A DNA stretch of 34,891 nt. Source: Caecitellus pseudoparvulus (lineage: Eukaryota; Protista; Bigyra: Bicosoecida). The translations under genes and the position numbers were made by a program. Positions 10,686 to 34,891 of the stretch are shown in pieces (position 1 is the stretch's first letter; every line of letters starts with the position of its first letter). Location of the stretch: contig CBFFRQ010000107.1 in assembly GCA_965644315.1 (NCBI GenBank), forward strand, positions 1-34,891, read 5' to 3'. Below the pieces are notes generated by a model. It saw nothing but the letters and a program-made list of their open reading frames with translations, did no database searches and was not told where the DNA came from.

Positions 10686-10885
10686 CTCATGCCATGGTCA
10701 TTCAGCATTGGGCCCCTCATCCACCGCCAGCAGCTTGGTCAGCGACCAGTCCGCACTGCGAGTAGGCCAAGACAACAGCAGCGGCGAGCTTCACCGGCAG
10801 CAGCGGGGCCAGGGTGCAACGCCAGCCTTCCACTTCACATTCAACAATGTTGCAAAGGCATTGACGTGCCAATCACGGCAGCCGC

Positions 10886-11895
10886 CCCACCTCGCGTCAG
10901 GCTCACAAATATCTCCCGTGCAAGAAACTGCACCTACATCCGATTTCCGCAGCTCAGCTGCCTGCACTGCACAGCCCCCTGGCCCTTTTCGCGGATAAAT
11001 ATCAGAAATGCAGATCTCTGACCATTTTCTACTGCGCTGAGACTTCGTGCTCGCCGTCCTGTTGTCCCAGCTCTCGGGCTCTCGTTTCCAGGCTTCACTA
11101 CATTGTTGACTGGTTCTCCCAACAGCAGCGTCAGCTGTTGCGAGCCGCTGCCCACAAGATCATGGCTGATCAAGAGCGACGACAGCAATAAAATGTGTAT
11201 ACAGCCTGGATAGATGTCGGAACTGCAAGAATTATTTGTTTGGTGGGCACTTGCGGCGGCACGGCCTCAATCTGGTGAGACAACGCTCGCCCCTGGTTCG
11301 CCACACGATGCACTGCATGCCTCGAAAGCTGCCCGGAAGGGTAAAGCTTTTGCAACAGTCCCCTATCTACTTGTTCTTGCTTGGCCCGAAGCTTGCATTA
11401 ACAATGTCAAAGGCTGCTCTCCCAACGCTGGAGCCACTCCTCGTCCGCCGAACTTTGATACAAAGAAATGCACATGAAGCAGAGCTTGCGTTTGAAACAC
11501 GCACACACGTTGTCCCAGGGCCCACTGCAAGCTGTTGAGGCACTGGAGGCATTTGCTGGGCCCTTGCGGCAATTGTTGGTTCTGAATTCTGGGGGTGCCG
11601 CAGACGGCAAAAGATTCTACTGGCCCCACGAGGTGGTCGCCGCACCTCCCGGATGGACGAAAGTCCTGAAAATGTGCATTCGGCACTGTGGGGCCGTGTT
11701 TGATCACGTGGTAGAACCTCACCTTCAGGGTGCAGGCGTGGAATGCGGGCAGCCCGCCGCGGACCACGCGCGGCGAGCCCGCTACACGGCCGCCACGCCT
11801 GCCGCCTGGACCATGCCGAGCAACCTCGCTCCTGGACGAGGTGGATCGGAAGAGGAGCAGGTATGGGGTGGATGTGGAAAACATGTGACCAGTAT
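10886..11895 (+). pseudogene. Decayed unknown gene convergent with NTPase-nuclease paralog 1 (partner copy 1)
   Basis: Frame 10886-11191 reads PTSRQAHKY...PISAAQLPALHSPLA...RLHYIVDWFSQQQRQLLRAAAHKIMADQERRQQ*. Further protein-like pieces occur in other frames (11236-11538, 11468-11965). Homologous to 30688-31130. Confidence 0.6.
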
Positions 11896-11899
11896 TGCA

Positions 11900-14800
11900 T
11901 TACTTCTTTTCTTGGGCTGGCACGGGGACTTCCAGGGACTTCATTTCTGGAGGAAGGAACCCTAGCTCAAACACTCCGTAGAAGCCTGGGATTGTCGCCA
12001 CCTCAGGTGAGTGACTGCCCTCGTCTATTGGCTGTGGTGTGCAGTAGATGAAGAAGAACTCAACATCACTGCTTTCCTGGATGGTTGCCGCAAGCGGAAG
12101 GTTCTCCAACTCCTCCTTCCCTTCGGCTGCCCCTGCTCCGCTCTCAATGACCTCCACAGCAACTGCGCTCTCGTCTGCATGTTCACCTTCTAGGCTTTCA
12201 CTGGTTGCCACTTCAAGAGTTCCAATATCATCATCCTCTTCATCAGCATCTATCTGTGTTTGCAGCAACCGAGCAGCATTGGCAAGAGCGTTGCTTCGCG
12301 ATGTGCCGGACAACACTTGTGGCTCCATGATAAGCTCCTCGAACTTCTTCTTCGAATTGCACTGAACTGTGCAGTTGAGATCGATGGGCACGCCAAACGT
12401 CCACAGGATGGCGTTCGCCATTGTGGTTTTCTTCCGACCCCCAAGATTCGACTTCCTAAACTTCATCTGTGACCCTTCGACTTCCGTGAAGTATTTGACG
12501 TTGCAAGCGAGGTTCGCGATGTCTCTGAGGGATTTTGGCAGTACAACCTCGCCCGTCGAAAGCGAATCATTGAAAGAAACAGCAAGATTCTTCAATATAC
12601 GGCTCTGCCCATGAGTTTCCAGGGAAGACACGGTGGTTTCAATGAAAGCCACCTGCAGCTTTGCTCGATTGTGTTCCGCCCCTGGAGTTGGCAAAGATGG
12701 GCGTCGGAAAACAACAAAGTCGACAGCCGGAAAGCTGTGGGGTGTGCGTACCACATGTACACTCTCAGGCTTCATGGTCTGCACGGCATACACATCAGCG
12801 GCTGAAAACCCGGCGCCCTCAGCTGTTTCCGTCGTTTGGGCTTTGGAAAATTCGTTGGTACCCTTGGTGTAGAAGTAGCTTCGAAGCATTTCAACAGGCT
12901 CTCTGTCTGCTGACTTTGACAGCGATGTGTAGTCGGAGCCAAACATGCCCATCTCCAGCAGACTTGCCACAGTGTGTTCAAAGTGCGTGCCACCACCAAG
13001 GTGGGCCACTCCATTCAGCAGTCTGTCCCAAGCATCCTTTGTTGCCTGGTCAGTGGTTGGCCCGGCAATTTCTCGGTGGCGCCTCAGCAGCGCCCTTATG
13101 AAAGCATGCCTTGCTATGTGAGATGCGAAGTCCACGTTCCCGTGCAACTTGAAGATGTTCGGGTTGACCCTCGAGAGGATCGACGCCGCAGCCATGGAGT
13201 GATCCAGGAACATGGCCACGCCTGGCTTATTGTCCAGCAGATCTTCCGCTGTCAAACTTTGGAATTTTTCTAGACACCGCCCTTCCATCCCACCCCTTGC
13301 CTCTACCCACGCTTCCCACACAGCCAAGGAGAACGAGTTGGGACCAACAACCGTGCTTGACTTCACGAATTCCGCAGCATGGCTCAGCGGACGAGCGACG
13401 CCATCAACAGACTCAATGAAGTCCTTCAGCAGCTTCAAATTGCTCTTCGTGCGCAGGTCTTCCATTGCCTGTGGGGGCAGCTGAAGGGAGCAATCGTGGC
13501 CTGCTGGCATGTCTGCAACAACGTCCACCTCCTTGGTCCACCCGAGAGAGTTCTTGCCATCCTTTGGCCCCAACATGAGCCGGAGCGCAAGCTCGGGCCT
13601 CATGCGTTCCATCTCAAAGAAGGGATGGAACATGTCGTTGGAAGTCTTGATTTCAAACAGCTTTTCCACGGGCTCGTAGACCTTCTTCTGAAAGAGGCTT
13701 GCGTGAAAATCAGGCGAGAATGCGAAGACTTTACTCGAGCCCTCTGTCCACTTGAACAACTCCTTCAGTTGGTACCACCACTGGGCATGCTGGCTGTCTT
13801 CTTCAGCAGGCTGGCCTTCACTGCCGGACATTGCTTCGCGACGGAGCAGCTCGCCTTGCACACTGTTGGCTTCGTCAATGATGAGCAAGCTAGGGGTGGG
13901 AAAGTCCCCCTCTTGTTTGCCGTTGTGATGGAACACTGAGCCACCACGAATCATCGTGCGTTCCAGGGCTTCGTATGCGTCAGCACCATAAAGGCCAATC
14001 GACGCCATGTCTTGGCACAACTCAGGCTTCTTGAGACTTTTGGCGCAGGACAGCGCAAGCCCGCCTTCCATCAGACTGCGCGCTCGCTTTTTGAACGTTT
14101 CTGTGCCTGGCACCAACACTTCTGACTTGGGCAAGTACATCACATCGCCGCCTGCGCCAAGGCCCAACATTAACGCCAACGCTCGCATTGACGCAGATTT
14201 GCCAGTTCCGTGAGAGGCTGTTGTCATGACCCCAAGTTGAGTTCCAAAGCAAGTTTTGGTGGCCTTCTCAAACAGCTTCACTCGCCCACGAGTCAGGACA
14301 TACGTCGTCACGGATAGGTCCTTACGCAGCATAGTCGAAGGTGATTCAGGGCGGATGCCGTACGTTGTTGGTCGCAAGCCTTGCAGAGACAAGTCTCCAA
14401 AGGGAACCTCTGTCAAGCCTGTCTTGTCGTGTCCAAACAGAAACGGCTGACCATTCCAAATAGGCAAGCGGAGAACCACAGCCTCCAAAATGCCGTCCAT
14501 GAAGATGGGAGAGCACCCTGTCGTCCACTCGATGCCCTTTTCGCCTTCTTCGGCATTCGGAAGGCACTTCTCCTCGGCGAGCCCTGTCATCAGCGCTTTG
14601 AAAACGTCCCACACTGTCGCCTTTTTTCGTCGGAAGGCATCCCCGGCCTCGAGCATCCAGCCGAAGTTGTCCACCAAGACATCCAAAGTTGCTTCGTCTG
14701 TGTTGAGGAGTCTCTGGATGAACTGCTTATCCACAACACCCGCATCTTCGAGCTGCTTCTTGGCCGCGTCTTCGCCTCGCCTCTTCAACAGCAGCAATGC

Positions 14801-15966
14801 ACGGAGTGGCACGGCCAAGTTCACAACTCCCAGCGCCCGAGCTTGGCTGTTGAACCACGCAGTGCGAACAGCCAGTCCAAGCGTTGCCTTGAAGTCGGCC
14901 ACCATGCTTGCGGAGACATGCTCCGGCAGCTCCTTGTCACAATATTTGTCAATGTCACACTTGGCCAGTGAGCCCACAGAGTGTGAGCAGACGCTCTTCA
15001 GAACCTTGACTCTATCCTCCGCCTTAGTAGTACCCTGCATCATCTTCATGGAGACCCTCACGACTCCACAACGCTTGAGGATTTCCCACAGCTCGTCTCC
15101 AGCACTTTTCTGAATAATCAAAAGCCAGAAGCCACTATAATGCGCAAGGAAGGTGAACACAAAGCGGAAAGTGTTCAACTCACCTTGCATGTCAACACTT
15201 CACTCTTGATGGCTTCCTGTGCTTCCATCTTCGCCAGCTTGGTTTCGATATCCAACAGTTTGGCCTTCGCGTCGCTCAAGTATGTCGGTAACTTCTCCGC
15301 CCACACTTGAGCAACGCGGTTCTCGAACTGCACCCCAATCGAGCTAATAAGTTCACCTTCGTGAGCCAGTTTCAAGCTGACGTCAATTGGCATGACAAAA
15401 ATGGAAGCAAGGAAACTATTTTGTTTTTCGGTACTTTTCTCCTCGAATCGAATCCCAAAATCAACTTGAGCTATGAAGCCGCTGGAGACGAGGGCTTGCA
15501 CCACGTTTACGTCGGGAGGTGCCTGCGAAGAAGGCCAGACAAAGTGCAGGACACGATGCCTCGCGCAGGCGTACCTCAAGGGCAAGCTACGTACCTTCAG
15601 CTTCTTGAGGGCAGAAAGGGCTATTTCCAATGGAACCTCTCCTTCTGCTTGCTCAAGCTCAGCCAAAGCCACAAGCAACTTCTCCCTCTTCTTCTGCGGA
15701 AACTTTTCCCACCATTTCGTGCTCCGAAGCTCTTCGCTGGCCTCCCGAGGCTCCGCCGCCGCAGCACCAGGCTCAGCCGCCGCAGCACCAGCTACAGACG
15801 AAGTGTGGCGCAACAGGCTGGGTGCCTGGGGCGGCTTGGGTGCGCGCGGTGGAGGCCAGAGGACTGAAGCAGCAGCAAATTCCGCCCCAACACTGCGCAA
15901 CGCCAACACAGGCCGCAGTGGCACCCCCAGGAAACGAGACAGGGTCGACGCAGCCTTCAAGCTCAT
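11900..15966 (-). CDS. P-loop NTPase + PD-(D/E)xK-like (REase-fold) nuclease, Crinkler/RHS-type, with mitochondrial-presequence-like N-terminus (~1306 aa, 3 exons)
   Basis: Exons 15966-15595, 15522-15184 and 15109-11900 join in frame. Walker A ASHGTGKS, Walker B LLIIDEAN, nuclease-like FPAVDFVV...AFIETTVSSLETH. N-terminus MSLKAASTLSRFLGVPLRPVLALRSV...LLRHTSS. Confidence 0.8.
15110..15183 (-). other. Spliceosomal intron (74 nt)
   Basis: AAG|GTGAGT...TTATTCAG|AAA. Removal fuses ORF 15175-15966 to ORF 11900-15190 in phase 0. Confidence 0.88.
15523..15594 (-). other. Probable spliceosomal intron (72 nt, frame-preserving)
   Basis: AAG|GTACGT...CTTCTTCGCAG|GCA, matching the size and splice signals of the other introns. 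Confidence 0.7.
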
Positions 15967-16069
15967 GGTGCCTTGCCTCGATGCTCAGGCGCTGCAGATG
16001 CTGACTATGCACGCTCACTACTCAAGGCTGCGCTGGTGCGGAAATGTGCGCAAGTCCACACAACGTAGA

Positions 16070-16454
16070 GCTGCACGAAGCTCTGAGGTGAGGCAAGCTT
16101 GAGCACGATGTGCCGGATGAACAGCACACGCCCTGCATCTTCTCGTGTTCATGGACCAGTCTTGATTTTTTCTTCTGCGTACAGTCGCGCAGCTTCGGCG
16201 AAATGCACGAAATGCCGCTTTTTGAGGTACGCGAATGATGCAAAAACATGTCTCAAGCAGCTGAAACTGGAGAACCAACGACAGAACAATGAGGAACCAG
16301 CGGCAGCTGCACCAGCAGGCGAGCCTGCCAATACGCTCCATGACATTCCATCAACTACTTTTTGGTTGCCCGCTCCTCCCACCTCCCGTACAGAGCCAAA
16401 GTAGGATCGCATCTTACCTGCAAGCGACCCAGTGGCAAACAGCACTGAGGCCAT
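16070..16454 (-). pseudogene. Decayed fragment of the NTPase-nuclease family
   Basis: WFSSFSCLRHVFASFAYLKKRH resembles DFASHIARHAFIRALLRRH (paralog 1). After the TGA at 16149-51, LFIRHIVLKLA resembles EFERDIVALLA (paralog 2). Confidence 0.5.
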
Positions 16455-16648
16455 CCACGAATCCATCAATATGATGTGCAAAGTCTTCCAAATGTGACCT
16501 TCAACAGTCACTTCAATGTGCAGCTAGCCTTCGTGCCACGCGCTGTGGGCTTCCTGCGAGCAAGGTGTACCTCGCCGCGCCCAGATTCCCAGGCAAGCTG
16601 CGAATTCAGCACGATCACCAGACCACAACTCAGCAGAATCTGTCTCCT

Positions 16649-19137
16649 TCATAAAACAGTTGTTGGAGACATCCGAGTTTTCTGTGCCCATTCAGCGCCT
16701 GCGATCCCTGACTGGGCATCCCACGGTGCGTCAGCTGTGAAGGTGGGGCCTGTGGCCTGCGTGAACGCCGCAGCGGCCAGAGACCCCTCGCTGAGCTGGG
16801 TGCCTTGGGCTGGCACGAATGCCAGCTGCCCTTCCACGGTAGAAGGCGCTTCTCCAAGGACGGACGCAGCAAGGGTGTGCACCGCACGGGCCAGAGCAGG
16901 CTGGTTGTGCACTGTGCCCTGCCAAACGCCATCTGCATCCAGGGTGCTGCTCGCCGCCAGCGCTATGGACAGCGGCTGCTGCACTGGCGCACTCCAAGCT
17001 GCGTCCACAGTCACACCCACGCTGGAGGCGACACTTGTCCAGCCGTCACTGGACTGCACGTGGAGGTTGGGGAACACTTGTGAGCCACTGGCGAGGTTCA
17101 AGCCAGACACGAGCAGCTCGCCTTGCAGGGCCTGCAGCTGGTCCAGTGGCACTGGCTGTGCGCCTCGCAAGTCTCGCAAGCCTGGCTGGGAGCCGAGGGA
17201 GATCTGCACAGAGTGAACAGGAGCCTGGGAAGCCACGGCCCACTGCACAGCCACGGCAGTTGTGTTCTGCTGGAAGCAACACAGCTCGCCTGCACTGCCG
17301 CTGGCAGTCAGCGGCACGGGTGCAATGGAACCTGAGAAGGCGGCCTCTTGCCCGATGAAGATGCTTCCACTGCCCGTGTTGGCAACGTTCCCAGCGCTGT
17401 CCGTCGCCCTCACCGACAAGGTCAACGCTTCCTGCCCGCCGCCCAGGGGCAAGGACAGGGTTGTGGCGGACAGTGAGGCGTTTGTGTCCAGCACAGCTGC
17501 AGGCGGAAGCGACACCTTTTGTGCCGTGCCCAGAGCAGTCCACCACAGTACTGCAGCTCCAGAAGAGGCGTTCACAACAGACACCTCGTACGTCAGGGAG
17601 CCTGCAGTCGCCACGGCGTCGCGCCACCGCCAACAGGCGTGCACTGGCGCCCCGACTGGCAGGAACAGATTCTCGACAGGCGGTGTGGACCCCGCATGCC
17701 CCCTGCAGGCAGCACACACTGACAGCCATGTGGGCACAGGAGCTGCCGTGTCCACCACAATGCCGTCTGTGAAGGCGTACGTCTGCAAGCCAGCGGCACT
17801 GGTCAGCATGACTGTTCCGTACAGCACGTCGCCCTGGCTTGGAGCAGAGCTGGGCACAGCAGAATACGTGTCTGAAGCCAGACCAGGGTGCGCATGCACG
17901 ACTGTCTGTGACGCTGCCACGACGTCCTCTGCACCGGGGCTGGTGCCCCACATGCACTGCACGTGCTCCAAGCCAGATTCGGCATCCGCTGCACCCTCCC
18001 ACGCCAGCGCTATGAAATCTGCAGATGCCGTGGATGCTGCGTCGAAGGATGCAGCCAGTTCATCGCCATCCAGGGGCGCCTGCAGCGAATCCCACACCCG
18101 CAGCAGTGTGGGGCCAGTGGCGTCCACTGCACCCGTGCGAGCAGTGCTGGTGGTGTACTCGCCAGCGCCATTTGCGACAGTGAGGGAGAAGTAGGCTCGC
18201 TACCTGTGCACAATGTTGGAGGCCAGGAATGTGTCGAGGGAGTCCACAGGCACAGCGGCAGGGGGCGCAAGCTGTGTGCCGCCTTGGGAAGTGCCAGCTG
18301 ACACGACCACCACAGCCAGGCCGCTTTCGGCATCTGCAGCGGCAACAAACGTCAGTGCAAAAGCGCCTGCTGCTCCAGACATGGAGGGTGCGCAAGGAGT
18401 GCAGTCAGTGATGGAGGCGCCGTGGGTGGCCTTGTACGTGCCAAGGGGGGGCACAGGCGCCACTGGCCGCCTCTCGGTACGTGCCTGGGGCACACTGCAG
18501 GGCTGGGGCATCTGAAGACATAGGCGGGCTGGGGGAGACACTCCCAATGGCACCCGAGTTGCAGGCATCACAGAGGGCGGGGTCGCTGCCCAGCACTTGC
18601 TTGCAGGCGGGCACGGCACAGGGCTCGCAAGCCTTGCTCGTCGCGTTCAGCACGGAGCCCGGTCCACACTGGCACACGCCGCCGCCGTGCGTGAAGTCTG
18701 GCACAAATGCAGCATTGGGGTCGGCACAGGCGCACGTGCTGCGCCCCGCAGGATCCCCGATCCCGAACGCTGTCAGCAACAGGGTCTGTGCACTCGCGCC
18801 AGCCAGGGAAGGCAGCGTCTCATCACAGGCAAAGCCGTCCGAGGAGGCCACGCTGGCGTGTCCTGCTTGTTCGTGGCACGAACACTGGTAAACACGGTGC
18901 TCCCAGGGGTCAACACCAGGCCTGTCGTAGCCCATGCCGTGCGTTGCGCCACGACTGACCAGAGCATGACGTCATCCAGTCCTGCGGCGCTGCCCAGCGC
19001 AACCTCGTCCGTTGCGATGCCAGTGGGGGCCACGAAGGAGTCCCAGTTCGCAGCTGCCTGACTGCAGTAGGCGGAAACGTCCACGGCACCGCCCAGTCGA
19101 GCGCCGTCGCGCACGATGCTGGCAGTGGCGCTGGCAT
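16649..19137 (-). pseudogene. FN3/Ig-like repeat surface-protein pseudogene with Cys-rich inserts, abutting the transposon
   Basis: Repeated motifs W..xxDAESGL/I, GTSPGAEDVV, SAAGL...TDGIVVDTAAP, SSDGFACDET. Two frameshifts (~18865, ~18447), an in-frame TAG at 18200-02, apparent 3' truncation near 16690, and a 5' end at the TIR. Confidence 0.75.
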
Positions 19138-31230: not shown

Positions 31231-34200
31231 TCAGCCACTGGGCTCACTTGGTTCACCGGCATCACTTGAGTCAGAGTCGAACACATCCGGAAACTCAGTG
31301 ATTTTTTCAGCCGTTGGCGTGGGCACAGGCACAAAGTCGCCACCCACCATCGCATGCACCAGCGGGGAGTCAAGGTACTTCGCGCATTGCTCCAAGTATG
31401 TCTTGTTTGCATCAAGACCTGTGTTTGTGATGTACAGCATGTGCACCCGCCACTCTGGCTTGCTTACTCCATCTACTGGCTCTGCTGTCACCCTCAGCTT
31501 CTTGTACTTGTCAACACCACTGCCCTTATGGTCGCCAGCTCCTTGCCCAACACCACTCACACCGTCAACGGTTACTTGCTCTGCCTTTACCCGCACGTCT
31601 GCCTTCAGCAGTTCTAACCAGGAGTTCACAACAGACATACCCCCCTCAGAGCCCTCTTCACCCCCAGCGTCTGATGCGGGCGCGTTCTCGCTGCCGCCAG
31701 TGTGCAACAACCTCACGTTTCCACCCTTGATAGCCTCGAGGTGTGATCGCTTTGAGAGCGCCACCTGTGCAATGTCGCGCAAGCCAGGGGGCACATCCGT
31801 GGGTTTTCCCTTTCCTGATGCGTGGGCGTACAGGTTGGAGGAAGTTACCTCTACGAACACGGCGTGCTTGACTTCTTTGTCACGATGCACCAACAAGGCG
31901 TCCACGCCAGGGCTGTTCTTCCACGTCTGGATCACCCAGGCGTCGCCTGCCTTCATGCCATGCAAGGATGACAACACATCTGCCGGCACCACGGAGCTCT
32001 CGAGCATGAGCTGGCTTGGTGGAACTTCGCCAACTTGTGGCGTCACCCCCTCCTTCAGTCCCAAGACTCTCATCAGTTGTGACAAACGAGGAGAGTTCGT
32101 GACCGATGCAGGCGACACCACCTCCACCAAGCCCAGGGAGTTTTCGTTCTGAGGGTACTCCATGGACTGCTTCACTTTCTCAGGAAGAAATGCTTGGCCC
32201 ACCGCCAAAGCACGGTGTCCGCACGCACCCAGCGCCAAGAGTGCGACAATGTCGCGCTCAAATTCACTCTCCGTGGAATCAGCCCCTCCTAACAGATTCG
32301 ACAATCGCTGCCCATCTGTTCTCCCGTAAGTACGTGACAGCAACACCTGCAGGAGGGCATGCCTCGCAGCCAAGGACACAAACACTGCGTTTCTTCTCAC
32401 CCTTTGGAGTTTGACATCAACACGAGATACCATGGAGGCATTCACCAGCCCATCAAGTGCATCCCCCATATGCAATCCCCAGGTCGCTGCCGCAATGGTG
32501 GACCAGGTAAGCGTCACCTCTGTGCTGTTGTCACGAAGCTGTCGCTCAAGGCGGCTCTGCAGCTCATCTGACAACTTGTCGAACGTTCGCTGCAGAGCCT
32601 GCTTGTGCCCCATGTGCTTCAGATCTTGAAGGTACTGCCGAACAAAGCGTGGCACATTGCCAAGGTACTGCAGCATTTCCCACACCTCATGCTCCGTTGG
32701 AATCGCAGGCCTGCCGCCCACTCCAGCGTGCCCTGCGCTTGGCAGCGACAGCTCTGCATCTACCCCACTAAAGAGCACTGCCATCATGGTCTTTGTCGTG
32801 GTTGGCCCCAGCTCGTAGAAAACCTCTGAAAATTGGCTCTTGATCGTTTCCTCCAAAATGGTGTCTGGGGAGCTTGCCAGCACACGCATCGTACCCATTG
32901 CTTGACTAAAACCGGACCAATCGCACCACTCTCGAAGCTCCCCTTGCAAAGTTAATGGCTTTGCATCCTTCACCTTTCGGTACAAATTGTTCACCTCATC
33001 CACCACAACCAAGCGGCGACTCTTTCGGGGCCCATGTTGGCTCGCGACACCGAACAGCATTTTCATCGCATTCATGAATACCATTGGAGGCGGTTCCTGA
33101 GGGCCCAGCAGCGGCCACATCCGTCTATGCAGCACATCGCCGCTCAGATTGTCCCCTGCGCTCGTGCTTAGTCCTTGCAGCAGTGTGTCAACTTCACTAC
33201 CAACAAAGGCACCGCCATCCCGTACATACAGCACGTCAGCCCCAGCGCCCACAGCCGCGATGCTGACCAACGCTGCCAGAGTGGTGCTCTTGCCGCATCC
33301 ATGCACCCCTGTCAACAAATGACCTGGGCGCTTTGTCTTCAGCGCTTCCGCGCAGCTTGCGAGGAAAGCAATGCGCTCTGGCGTCCACACGATGCTCACA
33401 GTGCGGACTGCTTCCCGCGGCAGCTGCTCCAGCGTGCCGTCTAGACGGGGCCGCACGGTACAAATGTGAACAAAGTCTCGTGCGCTTGGCCCATGAGTCA
33501 GTGGGAACAAGGACGGCGCTGCCTCCTCGTCTGTCGCCACGCAGATGCCATACTCTTGCTGGAAGTCTTTCGGCTCGAGAGCTTCGCTGCCCACAGGTGG
33601 AAGGAACCTTGTTGCAAATGCCACAACCTCCCCGTTCTTGTCAATCACAGGGTTCAATCCAGCGATGTCCATGGCGTGCTGCGACGCGCCTTCGCTTCCT
33701 GCTGCACCACCTGCATCGCCCGCTCGTCCCACGTGCTCCCTCTGCAGTGCAGCCTTGGCCCTCTCAAACCAATCCAATACTTCCTTCTTTCCTTCCAGCA
33801 TCGCTTCCCCGAGGCCAAGCTTCCAACCCAGCACATGCCGCAACGCCTGACGGTGGCTGGTCTCTGGCACGAACTCCTGCCCAGCCGCACTGTCGAGCAG
33901 AACTTCCCGCAGCGGAAGCACCGTATTCGAGACACCTGCAGAGGACAGCGCGGAAGCCCACGTGGCCTCTTCTTCGGCTCTCTTCTTGGCGGCGGCAGCT
34001 GCGGCGTCTGCAGCAGCTGCAGCAAGCTTCATTCGATTCATAAGCAGCACATGTATCAGCTGCTGGCGATTTTGCCGCTCTACGTAGAACATGTCTTGAA
34101 GAGACTTCTTGTTGATTTCCTTGGCGGGCACGAACAGCAGCGTCTCCATATCCTGCACTATCTCTCGCGCTGCAGCCTCCCAAGCCTGCTCATCCAAGTC

Positions 34201-34732
34201 CCGCAGTAAACCTCGCAGTGCAGGGCAAGCCAGTGCCAGAGCTGTTGCGGTTGTTGGGTCGGATCCCTGCGTCAAATGCGAAAAATGAAGTGCGCAACCC
34301 TCTCGGAAGCATGCAAGTACCACGGCCATCACCCCCAGCACGTACCTGAGGCAGCTCAGGGGGCAGAAATGGCACAGCAACATCCAGACCAAGTTCATGT
34401 AGAGCAGTGTGCAGACCTCCAGGCTCATACACGGCCAGCGTTTTCATCGCCGTAAGCACAGTGTCAGGCTCAGGCAGCATCGCCGTGCTGCTGAAGCGTG
34501 CTACTCCCACGCCCGGCCACGAGCGCCACGCCCTTGTACAAGACGCGGACTCTCGTCGCGGAACACTGCCTGGCATGGCTTCCCAGGCGTGCTCCACAGA
34601 GGAGGTGTACTCAACACAAGCAGTGGGCTTGAAAGCGCCGCCAGACGAAACGCCACCACGCCAAACAATGGCGGCGGCACCTCTGAGTGCCCTGCCAGCC
34701 GTAGCTAGAGCTGAGCGAGATGACAGAAGCAT
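31231..34732 (-). CDS. P-loop NTPase + PD-(D/E)xK-like nuclease, Crinkler/RHS-type, with mitochondrial-presequence-like N-terminus (~1140 aa, 2 exons)
   Basis: Exons 34732-34346 and 34266-31231. Walker A LTGVHGCGKST, Walker B LVVVDEVN, nuclease-like NSPGVDALLV...VFVEVTSSNLYAH. N-terminus MLLSSRSALATAGRALRGAAAIVWRG...ARFSSTA. Confidence 0.82.
34267..34345 (-). other. Spliceosomal intron (79 nt)
   Basis: CAG|GTACGT...TTTGACGCAG|GGA. Removal fuses ORF 34190-34885 to ORF 31231-34428 in phase 0. Confidence 0.88.
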
Positions 34733-34891
34733 GTCTGAGAAAGAATGCAAAGGCAGTGGAGTCGGGCGCACAGGCGCTCGATGGGAACTTGGAGTCGGTG
34801 TGGGCTTGTGCTGACGCCTGCGCCCCAGCACTTCGCAGAGCTTGCACAGCCTTGCGAAGCGCAGGGCTGAGCTTGCCTGCGTCACTTGAGG

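Follow-up and report, generated by a model that had tools for sequence, protein, structure and literature searches.

The gene and its transcripts

The window analyzed here, 34,891 nucleotides (nt) of Caecitellus pseudoparvulus DNA, is the whole of contig C107 of the assembly; the gene in question lies on its minus strand, at 11900-15966, directly downstream of a 734-nt non-coding stretch that recurs elsewhere in the genome. The gene is one copy of a large family, not a lone system; in the most probable reading, the gene is expressed and the family, confined to its lineage, encodes proteins of ~1,300 residues, in which an AAA+ ATPase is joined to a C-terminal domain resembling restriction endonucleases (REase-like). 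Two long open reading frames of the minus strand, 15966-15175 and 15190-11900, which have a few bases in common, are linked across a 74-nt intron; a further intron of 72 nt divides the upstream one (Table 1). By arithmetic from the exon coordinates, the coding length is 3,918 nt, i.e. 1,306 codons; the spliced protein is given here as these coordinates, the searches and fold predictions described below having been run on the separate exons.

Table 1. Coordinates of the gene, its 5' module, and the parts of its predicted product (positions in the window).
Feature	Position	Strand	Remarks
5' module (promoter and 5' untranslated region)	15967..16700	-	family-specific; RNA contigs reach about 16087
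Exon 1a	15966-15595	-	124 codons; ATG at 15966-15964; homologous in 18-20 genomic copies
Leader, codons 1-60	15787..15966	-	basic, amphipathic, one acidic residue; contains ..LLRHTSS
Intron 1	15594-15523	-	72 nt, GTACGT..CAG, GT..AG type, in frame
Exon 1b	15522-15184	-	113 codons; belongs to the region with no assigned fold
Intron 2	15183-15110	-	74 nt, GTGAGT..CAG, GT..AG type
Exon 2	15109-11900	-	last exon; carries the ATPase and the C-terminal domain
Start of exon 2 (its residues 1-239)	14393..15109	-	conserved, no fold assigned; alignment keeps W151, W167, P216, and others
Predicted AAA+ ATPase with helical C-terminal part	13190..14392	-	Walker A 14195-14218; Walker B 13871-13888
Predicted REase-like domain	11903..13189	-	E711 12977-12979; PAVD 12719-12730; ETTVSSLETH 12611-12640
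Disordered acidic insert inside the REase-like domain	12134-12220	-	
Stop codon	11900-11902	-	RNA contig extends to 11889

The gene is transcribed and twice spliced. The evidence comes from Logan contigs of RNA and DNA sequencing runs, which show the presence of a sequence and its joints, not expression levels. In run X1 both introns are seen removed: the contigs jump 74 nt at the joint 15109>15184 and 72 nt at 15521>15594, each time with CT..AC ends on the plus strand, i.e. GT..AG on the strand of the gene. The 74-nt joint is also present, with one base changed, in the transcriptome runs X2 and X3, whose contig departs from exon 1b at 15524 with a loose end and then continues with the last 19 bases of exon 1a. 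In run X19, depth is 85-106 over both intron sites and neither joint is seen, as expected if this run is genomic DNA. Although the first intron is in frame here, it is real family-wide, because the two halves of exon 1 are in different frames in the paralogs L013 and L010. At the 5' end, X1 depth stops in the 15917-16087 bin, with none further upstream, and the 154 nt preceding the start codon contain no upstream ATG. The 5' exon that a preliminary description of this locus had proposed to be added by splicing is thus present in the transcripts, and the RNA confirmation of the introns, which it had named as a check, is provided by these joints. A reservation attaches to the assignment of the transcripts to this very copy: the RNA evidence consists of assembled contigs that are 92-100% alike to the gene and may stem from C163, whose copy is 98% identical, or from a different strain.

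Further joints occur in the window at 14873-14946 and 15270-15463, comprising a 72-nt skip with non-canonical ends in the RNA runs X2 and X3, and a 192-nt skip in run X19; these probably reflect indels that distinguish paralogs or strains, not introns.

A leader resembling mitochondrial presequences

The first 60 residues of the protein contain eight K, R, or H and a single acidic residue, E29 (in the first 30 residues, K and R amount to four, D and E to one), and the leader is without a hydrophobic signal peptide. Its hydrophobic moment is highest over residues 4-21, at 0.55, a value reached by 129 of 5000 shuffled sequences; basic residues stand at positions 4, 11, 18, and 24, about seven apart. 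Four leader types occur in the family, named A, A', B (which includes the second paralog in the window), and C, and all four begin without an acidic residue for 27-40 residues and have the composition of presequences, being basic, hydroxylated, acid-poor, and amphipathic over 20-60 residues. The manganese superoxide dismutase (MnSOD) and the mitochondrial malate dehydrogenase of the same organism carry extensions of 30 and 19 residues, respectively, whose composition is like that of the leader. Strings of the kind R-x|x-S, which resemble processing-peptidase sites (arginine at -2 or -3) and are short and common by chance, end the leader types A, A', and B (RH/TS, RF/SS, RF/AS), type C having CF/SS or HF/SS at the corresponding end; an R-S/V-G string, equally short and of a kind common by chance, is found earlier in the leader. 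Composition and amphipathy give the character of a presequence to the N-terminus that had initially been described as rich in Arg, Ser, Leu, and Ala, with one acidic residue and the string LLRHTSS. The leader is simplest read as a mitochondrial presequence, which would direct import of the protein; we put this forward tentatively, as a reading whose chances fall a little short of even.

Several observations pull the other way, and most of them speak for a different reading, in which the leader is a family-specific header in the style of Crinkler/RHS-type (CR) proteins, used for some other route or partner, and the target of the protein is nuclear or foreign (e.g. viral) DNA in the nucleus or cytoplasm; this is a distinct possibility, which we nevertheless incline against. 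The leader is long, with a proline-rich half, and two motifs are common to all four types: E[FYV]..W, and an R[FH]x[SA][ST] string followed by EP; ordinary presequences are without such motifs, which together with the Pro-rich stretch suggest a recognized element. The header moreover moves as a unit from body to body, in the manner reported for Crinkler N-termini, and the Crinkler/CR proteins studied to date act in nuclei (PMC5289972). The GC-rich genome by itself favors N-termini rich in Ala, Arg, Ser, and Pro, and the four leader types are homologous and hence not independent cases. Against a header of this kind stand the acid-free and amphipathic start of every type with its regularly spaced basic residues, the closeness in composition to the presequences of MnSOD and malate dehydrogenase, and the lack both of a hydrophobic signal peptide and of any basic nuclear-localization cluster conserved across paralogs, as read from the family alignments. 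Plastid targeting is unlikely, no light-harvesting protein gene having been found in the assembly, in a search whose control was uninformative. A literature search turned up no Crinkler-type protein described as having a mitochondrial presequence.

Just past the leader, a 21-nt tandem duplication at 15748-15791 in exon 1a encodes an Ala/Glu/Pro linker. The 98%-identical twin on C163 (L005 5585-4782) has one more unit of it, a 7-residue insertion; linker length thus differs between copies. The second paralog of the window (31231-34428) has an upstream exon of its own with a different acid-poor leader, of type B (34190-34735, minus strand; L035-L042). Compared with six other copies, this leader shows 74-97% identity to five and 64% to the one on C19, and it is related to the leader of type C.

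Recombination of the 5' module

The 734-nt module upstream of the start codon occurs 17 times in the genome, each time directly 5' of a leader exon of the family, and ten of these copies are 81-91% identical over all 734 nt. Header and body tell different histories. Against the copies on C137, C32, and C109, the header shows a synonymous divergence (dS) of 0.13-0.18 and a nonsynonymous divergence (dN) of 0.07-0.08, whereas the synonymous sites of the bodies are saturated (proportion of differing sites, pS, 0.71-0.76) at a dN of 0.54; conversely, the nearest bodies, those of the C87 and C176 copies (dN 0.15-0.17), have more distant headers (dS 0.6). Because header and body divergence are discordant in this way and the upstream 734 nt are family-specific, the 5' module appears to be homogenized or exchanged by recombination, and judging from these distances the leader with its upstream 734 nt is far younger than the gene body. 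At 0.3-0.6, the dN/dS of the header does not fall below the 0.3-0.4 of the body, and the strong conservation of the leader largely reflects recent recombination, not extra constraint.

A candidate relic of the family at 16070-16454 was rejected: it shows no significant protein similarity to the family and lies in the shared, non-coding 5' module.

The AAA+ ATPase and the C-terminal domain

The middle of the protein is predicted to be an AAA+ ATPase. Walker A (ASHGTGKS) and Walker B (LLIIDE) are both intact, and their key residues are conserved in 38-41 of 42 relatives. The model covering residues 240-640 of exon 2 (predicted local distance difference test score, pLDDT, 75) has an AAA+ fold, for which Foldseek finds ORC, Cdc6, TnsC, Vps4, and NLR resistosomes as matches. 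Walker A of the form [AG]x4GK[ST], Walker B of the form hhhhDE, and a fold with a helical lid are the features of the AAA+ clade of ORC/Cdc6 and MuB/TnsC, and in its modeled structure the ATPase resembles these proteins and the archaeal Walker-ATPase kind. At the level of sequence, a search of the PDB with the ATPase gives P-loop matches only, and scanning the protein and its relatives with Pfam, NCBIfam, and PADLOC gives nothing past the P-loop level; at E-values up to 1, Pfam assigns no family to the protein or to the 42 relatives. For exons 1a and 1b there is no Pfam match and no useful atlas lead, and cluster look-ups of the relatives yield no names.

The C-terminal domain likely has a restriction-endonuclease-like, i.e. 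PD-(D/E)xK, fold, to judge from its model (residues 641-1069; pLDDT 83.5, predicted template modeling score 0.85) and the placement of its conserved residues. Nucleases of this class have an alpha-beta-beta-beta core in which strand 2 opens with an acidic residue and strand 3 carries (D/E)xK. E711, conserved in 34 of 42 relatives, sits in a helix of the model; P794 and D797 (40/42 and 41/42) immediately precede a strand; and E824 (32/42) is near the end of the strand after that of D797. H833, N899, and R647 are nearly invariant among the 42 relatives, and the domain has the signature E...PxxD...ExT.S...H. Searches with this domain by Foldseek against the PDB, by an atlas fold search, and by sequence against the PDB all returned nothing.

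Whether this domain cuts nucleic acid is, on the model and the alignment, about an even question. In 37 of 42 relatives, threonine stands where ExK has its catalytic lysine, and in one subfamily (the C67 copies and the database record P0002, described below) the glutamate is gone as well. The domain might thus be a nuclease-dead binding module, and the protein an ATP-dependent sensor or scaffold, STAND/NLR-like or ORC-like. We regard this as unlikely: E711, D797, E824, H833, N899, and R647 are conserved in 32-42 of 42 sequences that span 15-45% identity, as in a working active site, and replacement of the catalytic lysine is tolerated in known REase families, such as those of BamHI and BglII. 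The tandem pair of subfamily A' genes at G000:C67:105301-108372 and 112176-115265 (L008, L011) has lost E-x-T (the strand reads AFVLP) and kept PxxD, which suggests that some paralogs are catalytically degenerate.

The P-loop NTPase and the REase-fold-like C-terminus of the preliminary description have therefore fared differently. The former is upheld and made more specific, as an AAA+ ATPase, by the model, Foldseek, and the Walker motifs; the latter holds in kind, through the model and the conserved residues, with weak support from scores and with Thr for the ExK lysine. Likewise, comparison of both domains by Foldseek, which it had suggested, matched the ATPase to AAA+ proteins and the C-terminal domain to nothing.

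A large family restricted to one lineage

A search of the 30.6-Mb, 215-contig assembly with a profile of the body gives 51 matches from 45 scored candidates, and the family has at least 45 copies in the genome. Most occupy small contigs (20-70 kb) or lie no more than ~35 kb from the end of a larger one, often in tandem. Beyond this genome, 1.84 billion representative proteins, searched exhaustively with HMMER, yield 58 matches, none of them named; a second, word-indexed protein search with a 44-sequence profile yields nothing further, and a scan of viral contigs no relative. Of the outside records, the two closest are strain-level versions of other paralogs: L001, a metagenome contig, is at a dS of 0.06 from the C32 copy, and P0002, from a record labeled Symbiodinium sp. 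KB8 (L018, a 4.6-kb contig), is 97% identical to the C67 copy at 105301-108372. Because of this identity, the KB8-labeled record is most likely a contaminant of that dinoflagellate culture, and the dinoflagellate assembly probably includes a stray contig of the present protist. True outside relatives have at most about 27% identity.

The Symbiodinium sp. KB8-labeled record is the only named database relative, and near-identical pieces are found in sequencing runs labeled as six different organisms.

Close paralogs have a dN/dS of about 0.3-0.4, which denotes purifying selection. That these genes are selfish and derived from a transposon, a TnsC/MuB-like ATPase coupled to a TnsA-like nuclease that spreads through repeat-rich DNA and does the host no service, is very improbable: copies do lie on small, repeat-rich contigs next to transposons and dispersed repeats, and CR NTPase-REase modules are presumed, in the account given by PMC5289972, to be of prokaryotic, transposon-linked origin, but the unit is flanked by no terminal inverted repeats or target duplications and contains no transposase, it has spliceosomal introns and a host-type leader, its dN/dS and its retained ATPase motifs indicate selection on the protein, and its bodies have diverged to saturation, unlike those of a recent burst.

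A candidate convergent partner gene at 10886-11895, adjoining the 3' end of the gene, was rejected as a dispersed repeat with many copies away from family genes and no RNA coverage. In the genome, the repeat (10880-11899) is present at least 50 times, and over a core of 345 nt (11515-11859) its copies share about 90% identity; its DNA depth in X19 peaks at 2,219, and the RNA runs have none.

Comparison with known systems

CR proteins, with which the gene had initially been identified, are the nearest parallel. Their commonest C-terminus combines an NTPase, a helix-turn-helix (HTH) part, and a REase domain, and they occur also in free-living eukaryotes, as Zhang et al. (2016) are reported in PMC5289972. 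The family shares with them the order of P-loop NTPase, helical part, and REase-superfamily domain, in so far as the AAA+ and REase-like models are correct; the recombination of a conserved N-terminal module onto divergent bodies; and large lineage-specific expansion. It differs in its leader, which is apparently neither ubiquitin-like nor one of the described helical headers and resembles an organelle presequence; in its nuclease motif, ExT and not ExK; and in its host, a free-living marine protist and not a pathogen. In addition, no sequence profile ties the protein to Crinkler, RHSP, or any PD-(D/E)xK family, the profiles tested for CR kinship being those of Pfam, with the CR profiles of Zhang et al. 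outside the test set. The CR identity therefore stands as a correspondence of domain order, for which Pfam, NCBIfam, and PADLOC give no match past the P-loop. A language-model search offers two weak leads, a large Mucoromycota cluster (0.90) and a trypanosomatid cluster that carries RHSP (0.82).

The RHS proteins of trypanosomatids are, like the present family, multigene, located in repeat-rich or chromosome-end regions, and provided with a common N-terminal part; the Pfam RHSP model fails on the family, however, and no retroelement insertion hot spot is seen here. RHS proteins are nuclear.

For the ATPase part, the archaeal Walker-type ATPases PAB2304 and SSO1545 (2qen, 2fna), MuB, and TnsC have 11-15% identity to the family, and the matched chains are without a REase fusion, a leader, or a long N-terminal region. 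A specific origin from the mitochondrial ribosomal protein mS29 (DAP3) was rejected at the sequence level: with the Pfam DAP3 model, a single, ordinary mS29 gene is recovered and no family member, and hhalign of the family with mS29/DAP3 aligns the P-loop alone, at a probability of 31%. Mitochondria do contain PD-(D/E)xK nucleases, MGME1 and Pet127, which are single-copy housekeeping enzymes without an AAA+ domain; the family would have fold class and compartment in common with them if import is real, and no sequence similarity to them was found. Taken together, the family is an orphan variant of the NTPase-REase kind with a recombining, presequence-like leader, and this variant is new.

A possible mechanism and its implications

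The protein would consist of a basic leader, an N-terminal region with no assigned fold, an AAA+ ATPase, and a C-terminal REase-like domain. Binding and hydrolysis of ATP by the AAA+ part might control assembly on nucleic acid, and this assembly might in turn gate the nuclease-type domain, as proposed for the NTPase-HTH-REase modules of Crinkler/RHS proteins. The leader, as a presequence, would place the protein in the mitochondrion. The family would diversify by duplication and by ectopic recombination, which would shift the promoter-plus-leader module between divergent bodies; this pattern is compatible with a role in genetic conflict or defense. Nuclease activity, ATP gating, biological role, and location are all inferred. 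In its full form, the scheme would be that of a nuclear family of ATP-gated nucleases imported into mitochondria, with mitochondrial DNA or genetic parasites of the organelle as their targets, or with infection as the trigger by which they set off an organelle-based cell death, the leader being kept uniform by recombination while the bodies diversify; as a whole, this remains doubtful.

Crinkler/RHS-type NTPase-nuclease proteins are widespread in eukaryotes, with roles known only from plant pathogens. The present family is expressed, sits in a small, tractable genome, has a clear recombination pattern, and carries an address label that can be tested. If the leader does not direct import, the family is still a clean case of a conserved 5' unit exchanged among divergent enzymatic bodies, as well as an orphan AAA+/REase lineage for which 1.84 billion proteins yield no more than 58 representatives. 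If it does, the family would be the first of its kind, an expanded and diversifying set of nucleases directed to an organelle, and it would raise the question of conflict within the mitochondria of protists.

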